Shown here in pieces: positions 2,387 through 62,936 of a stretch of 64,000 nucleotides of DNA. The notes under the pieces were generated by a model. The model ran no database searches. It saw only the letters and a list, made by a program, of their open reading frames with translations, and was not told the DNA's origin. The DNA comes from Octopus bimaculoides (lineage: Eukaryota). The translations under genes and the position numbers were made by a program. The DNA lies in contig NC_068985.1 of the NCBI RefSeq assembly GCF_001194135.2, forward strand, positions 25,443,291 through 25,507,290. The letters are read 5' to 3'. Positions within the stretch are counted from its first letter, which is position 1, and the number at the start of each line of letters is the position of its first letter.

Positions 2387-2569
2387 TTGGTTAGGATTGG
2401 TCACAAATACAGAAAACACACTTGTTCCAACTGAAATATCAGCATTTTTTTCTGTGCTATAAAAACTCTGAGTAAAAATTGGAGGCTGAACGTTTCTGAA
2501 CACTTCAATCCTCATCATAGTTGTGGCTGTCTTTGGAGGTGAACTGTTGTCAGCAACTTTCACTTCAAA
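2387..2569 (-). CDS. cadherin exon A, class Y (exon 36)
   Basis: tgccag|FEVKVADNSSPPKTATTMMRIEVFRNVQPPIFTQSFYSTEKNADISVGTSVFSVFVTNPNQ|gtaaga; 183 nt. Confidence 0.92.

Positions 2570-62936: not shown

Follow-up and report, generated by a model that had tools for sequence, protein, structure and literature searches.

The stretch of DNA analysed here, hereafter called the window, covers 64,000 nucleotides of the Octopus bimaculoides genome (NCBI RefSeq assembly GCF_001194135.2, contig NC_068985.1, positions 25,443,291 to 25,507,290 of the forward strand). It is AT-rich (34% G+C) and carries on its minus strand, between positions 2387 and 62936, part of a gene encoding a giant cadherin whose extracellular cadherin (EC) repeats are of two alternating types. 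From the open reading frame (ORF) listing and the stop-free segments, we assembled 36 exons, 18 long and 18 short, which follow one another in nine rounds of the order a-X-b-Y, X and Y being the long exons and a and b the short ones. A module of four exons and two domains repeated nine times had already been proposed in a preliminary description made from the letters of the DNA alone, and the unbroken order of these phase-0 exons bears it out. The 18 coordinates given there mark the low-coordinate (3′) ends of the long exons; the series opens at 62936, where the first short exon begins. Sixteen of the short exons came from a motif scan, the other two (41568-41446 and 9498-9370) from inspecting the two intervals that the scan had missed; a short exon precedes every long exon, the first included.

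The length of every exon is a multiple of three, and each is preceded by a pyrimidine tract and AG and followed by GT, mostly within GTAAGT (36/36). All introns are in phase 0, and the joined exons yield an uninterrupted product of 1,852 amino acids (aa). Two introns fall at fixed positions in every EC, hence four exons per two-domain AB unit: a long exon encodes the final third of one EC and the opening third of the next, with the inter-domain linker between them, and a short exon encodes the middle part of an EC. The genomic modules measure 4.2-8.7 kb and succeed each other with a regular period. No more cadherin-like segments were found in the flanks (1-2386 and 62937-64000), which indicates that the gene runs beyond the window at both ends.

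The exons fall into two classes in strict alternation, as had been claimed, for 18 of the 18 repeats in the window, and nearest-neighbour, lag, and permutation tests agree on this point. When all-against-all global alignment scores are compared, the nearest neighbour is of the same class for every long exon (18/18) and for 17 of the 18 short ones. Similarity is higher within than between classes (permutation p ≤ 1e-4 for long exons, 2.5e-4 for short exons), and it is always higher at even lags (2, 4, 6, 8) than at odd lags, with no fall-off with distance. We then re-cut the protein at the conserved P-x-F, which gives 17 complete domains: a type A domain is made of the C-terminal half of a Y exon, an a exon, and the N-terminal half of an X exon; a type B domain is made of the C-terminal half of an X exon, a b exon, and the N-terminal half of a Y exon. 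Neighbour joining of these domains recovers exactly the odd/even (A versus B) bipartition that the preliminary description had led us to look for. Clustering by the unweighted pair group method with arithmetic mean, forced to two clusters, split off isolated outliers and not the two classes.

The class motifs, first described as occurring “mostly” or “often”, hold in those terms and are class-specific at the following frequencies. A[YF][DN]xxxP is present in six of the nine X exons and in none of the nine Y exons, [RK]NxxxPxF in 8/9 X and 1/9 Y exons, and AxDxGxP in 4/9 Y exons (7/9 with a relaxed pattern) and 0/9 X exons. Among the short exons, (D/N)xxTY marks 6/9 b exons and [YF]Fx[IVL]xP 5/9, neither being found in any of the nine a exons; a terminal Yx is carried by 7/9 a and 3/9 b exons. 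The signature of a type A domain is GxxxYxIxGxxPxxxFF, AYDxxxP, and the linker R/K-N-x-x-x-P-x-F. Type A is the derived type and type B the one that resembles ordinary cadherin repeats, with the acidic residues of DxD and AxDxG retained.

The product consists of 18 true cadherin EC repeats of a giant protein of the cadherin superfamily. The Pfam family Cadherin (PF00028) matches it with E = 2.1e-142 in 16 significant stretches, and its sequence matches in the PDB are CELSR1 (1.9e-61), protocadherins, PCDH15, and CDH23, with Fat4 weaker (E = 1.6e-15). Prediction of the structure of segments of four to six domains had been suggested at the outset, and a segment of four was modelled. From a single sequence, AlphaFold gave no usable model (predicted local distance difference test, pLDDT, 33); from a 21-row in-register A-B-A-B alignment of the window with members of its family, AlphaFold2 gave a confident one, with four predicted beta-sandwich domains, a mean pLDDT of 91.4, and a predicted template modelling (TM) score of 0.60. 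The best Foldseek matches of this model are four-EC crystal structures (probability 1.00), of CELSR1 EC1-4 (E = 9e-31), PCDH15, and protocadherins, and the alignments extend over all its domains.

The textbook cadherin ectodomain is a chain of near-equivalent repeats rigidified by Ca2+. Every joint of the octopus protein departs from this rule and does so in a conserved, alternating fashion. In a census anchored on the invariant linker proline, the canonical Ca2+-binding linker DxNDN was found at none of the 18 linkers. At the X (A-to-B) linkers, position -5 is R or K in 9/9 and position -4, the equivalent of Asn102, is N in 8/9; the Asp103 position is never acidic (0/9) and the Asp100 position is acidic in three of nine. 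At the Y (B-to-A) linkers, no acidic residue stands at the Asp100 position (0/9) or at the Asp103 position (0/9). The DRE motif is without its first Asp throughout (0/17 domains). DxD is retained in 7-8 of the nine B domains versus 2-3 of the eight A domains, and the Asp of AxDxG in 8/9 versus 3/8. V-x-R-N-x3-P-x-F and the A-x-D-x-D of the B domain are among the most conserved columns of the family alignment, where the R and N of the R-N-x3-P-x-F linker are at least 80% conserved. The two kinds of joint, therefore, differ systematically: A-to-B joints retain a partial site together with an invariant basic residue, and B-to-A joints are without the ligands.

With 1,027 aa of the product as query, a word-indexed search retrieved, as its closest matches, proteins of Owenia fusiformis and Dreissena polymorpha with 28% identity and lengths of at most about 1,800 aa. 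It missed the octopus protein P0020 (UniParc UPI0006955DBA, 2,803 aa), which was recovered by an exhaustive search of representatives with a profile of the X exons. Run against 1.84 billion representatives, the profile of the nine X exons matched 8,465 proteins, of which we inspected the best 150, a sample that speaks for presence in the organisms named and not for absence elsewhere. About 17-19 of these 150 alternate; in each of them, DxNDNxP occurs 0-1 times and RNxxxPxF many times. In the other matches among the 150, almost all domains are called “B” and alternating runs do not exceed 5 domains, and nearly all of these proteins have 8-44 canonical linkers; an unnamed ENA protein, P0128, is a borderline exception with an alternating run of 7. 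Short generic cadherins from two further searches, taken as controls, show no alternation.

A search with class-specific models had been proposed from the start, and hidden Markov models (HMMs) of the window's A and B domains revealed alternating runs of 13-22 domains in five genera. We counted 22 and 19 consecutive ABAB domains in Patella P0022 and P0025, 16 in Bulinus P0120, 15 and 13 in Haliotis P0021 and P0023, and 13 in Tubulanus P0026; Lingula P0027 has 13 with the adjacency rule and 22 consecutive alternating calls without it. All the alternating proteins of the best 150 that bear an organism name are lophotrochozoan, from six gastropod genera, two bivalves, an annelid, a nemertean, and a brachiopod. 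They bear database names such as “protocadherin Fat 4-like” or “hypothetical”, and the statement of the preliminary description that mollusc and annelid relatives are automatically named Fat4-like was correct. The idea that selection maintains class identity also finds support here, the same two classes alternating over up to 22 domains in other lophotrochozoans.

The complete members of the family, Patella P0022 and P0025, Tubulanus P0026, and Lingula P0027, share a common C-terminal layout. At least 20 alternating A/B ECs are followed by a few canonical ECs with DxNDN linkers near the membrane, with a furin-like site (RKKR/RRKR) within the penultimate EC; after the last EC come a non-cadherin juxtamembrane region of about 150 aa without Pfam match, one transmembrane helix, and a short tail with the conserved motifs QSLxMFxPPD..LGExN..F and NPxY. 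Pfam returned cadherin-type matches only, and no EGF or laminin-G module, for P0022, P0026, and P0027, and no match for the tails and post-EC regions of the homologues. The conservation of the furin-like site and of the tail motifs suggests proteolytic maturation and a shared cytoplasmic partner. In Patella vulgata, P0030 (XP_055954920.1) and P0025 (XP_055954929.1) are neighbours on the same 94-Mb contig and both are incomplete models: P0025 begins in the middle of an EC, and P0030 stops inside the EC array and shows no membrane anchor. Together they may represent one gene of about 5,000 aa, split in two.

P0020, the top match of the X-exon profile, contains 21 of the 36 window exons verbatim. 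It is without exon 4, part of exon 3, exons 15-27, and exon 35 (about 750 aa in all), stops exactly at position 2387 of the window, and reaches 1,702 aa further upstream; its skip of 13 exons covers four of the five assembly gaps. If an X exon were joined in frame directly to a Y exon, with the b exon left out, a cadherin domain would be broken, which argues for an annotation artefact and not for an isoform. To judge by the verbatim exons, P0020 is an incomplete public model of the window gene, and the 15 exons absent from it are now supplied (Table 1).

Table 1. Exons of the cadherin gene in the window, in the order of transcription, with their occurrence in the public model P0020.
Exon	Class	Length (aa)	Position	Strand	Support	P0020	Remarks
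1	short a	38	62823..62936	-	AG acceptor, GT donor, phase 0	verbatim	GTVKYKIV...
2	long X	61	59666..59848	-	splice sites	in	A-type EC end, KKNPSGPYF linker, B-type EC start
3	short b	43	56846..56974	-	splice sites	partly in	DQLTYY...
4	long Y	61	56150..56332	-	splice sites	not in	
5	short a	42	54624..54749	-	splice sites	in	
6	long X	62	53713..53898	-	splice sites	in	
7	short b	38	52022..52135	-	splice sites	in	
8	long Y	61	49412..49594	-	splice sites	in	
9	short a	43	48352..48480	-	splice sites	in	
10	long X	61	47736..47918	-	splice sites	in	
11	short b	45	44792..44926	-	splice sites	in	
12	long Y	62	42776..42961	-	splice sites	in	
13	short a	41	41446..41568	-	splice sites	in	
14	long X	61	39856..40038	-	splice sites	in	
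15	short b	41	37898..38020	-	splice sites	not in	
16	long Y	61	35632..35814	-	splice sites	not in	
17	short a	41	34833..34955	-	splice sites	not in	
18	long X	61	32768..32950	-	splice sites	not in	
19	short b	41	30229..30351	-	splice sites	not in	
20	long Y	63	28281..28469	-	splice sites	not in	
21	short a	43	26110..26238	-	splice sites	not in	
22	long X	62	24465..24650	-	splice sites	not in	
23	short b	41	23365..23487	-	splice sites	not in	
24	long Y	60	21729..21908	-	splice sites	not in	
25	short a	40	20411..20530	-	splice sites	not in	
26	long X	61	18671..18853	-	splice sites	not in	
27	short b	40	15235..15354	-	splice sites	not in	
28	long Y	63	13230..13418	-	splice sites	in	
29	short a	43	12087..12215	-	splice sites	in	
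30	long X	61	10416..10598	-	splice sites	in	
31	short b	43	9370..9498	-	splice sites	in	
32	long Y	61	7630..7812	-	splice sites	in	
33	short a	44	6477..6608	-	splice sites	in	
34	long X	61	5341..5523	-	splice sites	in	
35	short b	41	4387..4509	-	splice sites	not in	
36	long Y	61	2387..2569	-	splice sites	in	P0020 ends here

The preliminary description knew of no functional account of such a protein, which was too strong. Passages of two papers that cite Wang & Ragsdale 2017 (PMC6339937, PMC6062618) mention a cadherin of O. bimaculoides whose EC domains number 77, or “over 70”, and whose expression in the suckers is high. Like the window gene, this sucker cadherin is an octopus protein, is giant, and consists almost only of EC repeats, and the two may be the same gene. 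A partial model of octopus type, P0028 (1,915 aa), has a C-terminal part that best matches the start of Patella P0030 (37% identity), and it may lie further upstream in the same octopus gene. Adding up the 1,702 aa upstream, the 1,852 aa of the window, some 1,300 aa downstream (the expectation by analogy with Patella), and P0028 suggests a size compatible with 77 ECs. In the literature that we searched, neither alternating EC types nor this lophotrochozoan family are described.

The reading that we favour, with moderate confidence, is that of a lophotrochozoan giant cadherin of A/B type in which the A-B pair serves as building block of a largely Ca2+-independent filament, the function being one that the sequence suggests. 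One EC measures about 4.5 nm in established cadherin structures, and the physical building block would be an A-B pair of about 9-10 nm. The A-to-B joint would be a conserved, specialized interface with its invariant basic residue at the usual place of a Ca2+ ligand; adjoining the retained Asn and acidic residues of the following B domain, this residue would take the place of Ca2+, or a single site-3-like Ca2+ at most would remain. Having lost essentially all its Ca2+ ligands, the B-to-A joint would form a Ca2+-poor hinge between rigid A-B pairs. The outcome would be a very long filament, of at least 80 nm for the window alone, with a shape and a stiffness that depend little on Ca2+. Its role could be that of an adhesive or spacing link at the surface of an epithelium, which may be that of the suckers should the gene be the one with 77 ECs. 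We infer this mechanism from the conservation of the motifs and from a model that is confident at the level of domains.

Several points weigh against this reading. A-to-B linkers keep several ligands, and one or two ions could bind there. The exact A/B split was recovered in 52 of 200 bootstrap replicates (26%), a low value that is expected because of the long branches. The A and B HMMs were built from the window alone, with 8-9 sequences each, and the proteins of Owenia and Dreissena alternate cleanly over part of their length only. The global TM-score of the predicted model against solved four-EC fragments is about 0.4, with a root-mean-square deviation of 10-12 Å, so that its predicted inter-domain arrangement differs from theirs. 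Finally, the octopus gene begins and ends beyond the window, and the membrane anchor, furin site, and tail of its product are those expected from homologues about 31% identical to it.

One has to keep in mind that the alternation could serve binding and not only mechanics. The A/B order may constitute a binding register in which molecules zip together in cis or in trans, parallel or antiparallel, with A facing B, and build a ribbon or lattice of 9-10 nm period; this is the putative “heterodimeric register” of the preliminary description. Clustered protocadherins do adhere through an antiparallel overlap of several ECs. Class identity is kept position by position over more than 20 domains in several phyla, from which one may argue that both the fold and class-specific surfaces are under selection, and antiparallel overlaps of several ECs are documented in CELSR and protocadherin adhesion (PMC10160967). 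The most conserved class-specific residues, however, lie at linker, core, or motif positions and are not obviously exposed, and we regard the binding register as doubtful. A bolder combination, to which we give a similarly small chance, is a lophotrochozoan-specific class of giant cadherins in which two alternating protein-only joints, one of them centred on an invariant Arg-Asn, would have supplanted the Ca2+-rigidified linkers, forming a Ca2+-independent rod of about 9-10 nm period that would self-assemble, directed by the register, into a periodic extracellular link or a lattice; octopus suckers or other apical surfaces would be places to expect it. Should the favoured mechanics prove true, this would be a natural Ca2+-independent cadherin filament with a built-in periodicity, which bears on the spacing of membranes and surfaces; it would be relevant to cephalopod sucker biology if the window gene is the 77-EC gene.

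Could the window gene simply be the octopus orthologue of Fat4 or Fat? Relatives are named “protocadherin Fat 4(-like)”, and there are faint matches, at or below threshold, to the Pfam family Cadherin_FAT4_N. Fat4 has about 32-34 mostly canonical ECs, with EGF-like and laminin-G modules before the membrane. The complete homologues, on the contrary, have only cadherin domains and nothing of the EGF or laminin-G kind past the ECs; the proteins of the family have 0-1 DxNDNxP linkers each versus 15-40 in the Fat-like matches; and the Fat4 entry of the PDB is matched less well than CELSR1 or protocadherins, as given above. The absence of EGF and laminin-G modules and the non-canonical linkers indicate that, on these tests, the family is neither Fat nor Fat4, and we consider the orthology very unlikely. 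“Protocadherin Fat 4-like” is, thus, a misleading label for the whole lophotrochozoan family, whose genes can be re-annotated with the class HMMs and motifs.

The array is old. We compared the intron plan of the window with that of the Owenia locus L001 (CAIIXF020000009.1), which has the same long/short exon plan and introns at the same residues, namely, after the D-x-D-x motif and four residues ahead of A-x-D; every one of its exon lengths is divisible by three, and in one case the a and X exons are fused. The shared plan indicates that the AB super-repeat and its exon structure are older than the split between molluscs and annelids. Within the molluscs, the two-domain units are colinear with those of Patella P0025 (Spearman 0.92, p = 4e-4): the similarity of a unit to its positional counterpart is 0.25-0.33 versus a mean of 0.18 within the window. 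The best BLASTP register likewise exceeds the shifted one, with 811 versus 614 bits for P0022 and 791 versus 591 bits for P0025. The registers come out almost level for Lingula, Tubulanus, and Owenia. This unit-by-unit orthology with Patella implies that the array was laid out before cephalopods and gastropods separated. The exon structure and positional identity of the two-repeat unit have been kept for about half a billion years.

The preliminary description had the array grow by tandem duplication of a two-domain genomic unit. With A and B forming one clade each, the simplest origin is that a unit of two domains and four exons was duplicated, and this part of the claim stands as plausible but ancient, each position having apparently been conserved individually since. 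Growth in the octopus lineage does not stand, in view of the colinearity with Patella. A recent or ongoing duplication of a 6-7 kb module would fit the regular period of the modules and the phase 0 of all exons, which makes in-frame duplication of a module possible, yet it is scarcely probable. The deep divergence between modules reported earlier was confirmed, no significant DNA similarity existing between exons of different modules (best E = 5e-4). The strong DNA matches between modules can all be put down to a dispersed, SINE-like intronic repeat of about 210 bp, whose copies occur in either orientation and at positions that do not correspond between modules. The similarity of the units does not decay with distance, and each unit is nearer to its Patella counterpart than to its neighbours in the window. 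Separately, in Owenia, the exon for residues 1327-1372 of protein P0001 occurs three times within 6 kb (CAIIXF020000009.1, 47494-47631, 49094-49231, and 53367-53504) with identical translations, which points to a very recent local triplication or else to an assembly artefact.

That the exon series is a pseudogene or an artefact of assembly or annotation, as five assembly gaps and the 15 exons skipped in the public model might lead one to think, has next to no chance of being true against 36 of 36 open exons with canonical splice sites, gaps that are all intronic, colinearity with Patella with indels of at most 4 aa, and a confident AlphaFold model. The five runs of N lie 268-1,940 bp from the closest exon, and the a-X-b-Y order is continuous across each of them. 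Four of the five adjoin TA, TAA, or CA microsatellites (13780-13960, 16700-16865, 28758-28816, and 58700-58913), long microsatellites being typical breakpoints of short-read assemblies. Aligned with Patella vulgata P0022 over 1,882 columns, the conceptual protein shows no gap longer than 4 residues, and the same goes for P0025; the assembly gaps, therefore, hide no exon relative to the gastropod orthologue. An extra, octopus-specific whole module inside a gap is conceivable in formal terms only, the gaps being estimated at 933 bp or less and a module occupying several times that length.

The introns contain numerous further CA, TA, and GA microsatellites and other repeats. The best copies of the repeat of about 210 bp mentioned above, which occurs in both orientations, are 92-93% identical (24126-24336, 8299-8510, 44295-44488, and 58371-58563), and weaker ones lie at 45818-45990, 52586-52773, 29582-29773, 51666-51707, and 56511-56553. 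It is probably an octopus short interspersed nuclear element (SINE), although a scan with ARAGORN detected no tRNA-like region in it. Remnants of mariner-like transposases are present at 63244-63650 (both strands) and 1210-1900 (minus strand), with relatives that carry Pfam families of HTH_Tnp type; for the ORF 63311-63649, all the named database relatives are from Octopus sinensis or O. bimaculoides. An ORF of 106 aa (14523-14843, plus strand) in the intron between exons 27 and 28 resembles a fragment of a reverse transcriptase of the long interspersed nuclear element (LINE) type.

How does this protein compare with known cadherins? Fat and Fat4 are, like the octopus family, very large single-pass cadherins with tens of ECs; the octopus family differs from them in that essentially all its linkers are non-canonical and its two types strictly alternate. 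Tsukasaki et al. are said to have found, in 2014, some Ca2+-free linkers in Fat and Dachsous. Fat genes, according to the preliminary description, have large exons with several ECs, versus two introns per EC here. The contrast that it drew with clustered protocadherins is sound: these have six ECs in one large variable exon, whereas the 18 ECs of the window are spread over 36 exons.

Ca2+-free linkers as such have precedents. They occur in LI-cadherin (EC2-3), in DN- and DE-cadherin, and in CELSR, and the loss of DxNDN/DRE ligands at one linker alters the geometry or the flexibility of the ectodomain (PMC8427231, PMC8325961, PMC12038025). There the loss touches a single linker or a few of them; in the octopus window, it extends to 18 of 18, in two alternating, conserved flavours.

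CDH23 and PCDH15 of the tip link are likewise long filament-forming cadherins, and partial and Ca2+-free linkers are known to tune elasticity in PCDH15 (PMC5120219, PMC7547225). Most of the linkers of these two proteins are canonical, however, there is no alternation of two types, and their cytoplasmic motifs are unrelated by Pfam. PCDH15 also has a non-cadherin domain next to the membrane, which recalls the juxtamembrane region of about 150 aa in the homologues. That region matches weakly (E = 2e-5) the PCDH15 chain 6c14_A, which we take to comprise the last EC and the membrane-adjacent domain; the match also covers an EC, may be driven by it, and is no more than a lead.

Outside the cadherins, the super-repeats of titin offer an analogy, and an analogy only: there too, two related types of domain follow one another in a fixed periodic order, with positions conserved between species, but titin belongs to the Ig/Fn3 fold family and is intracellular.

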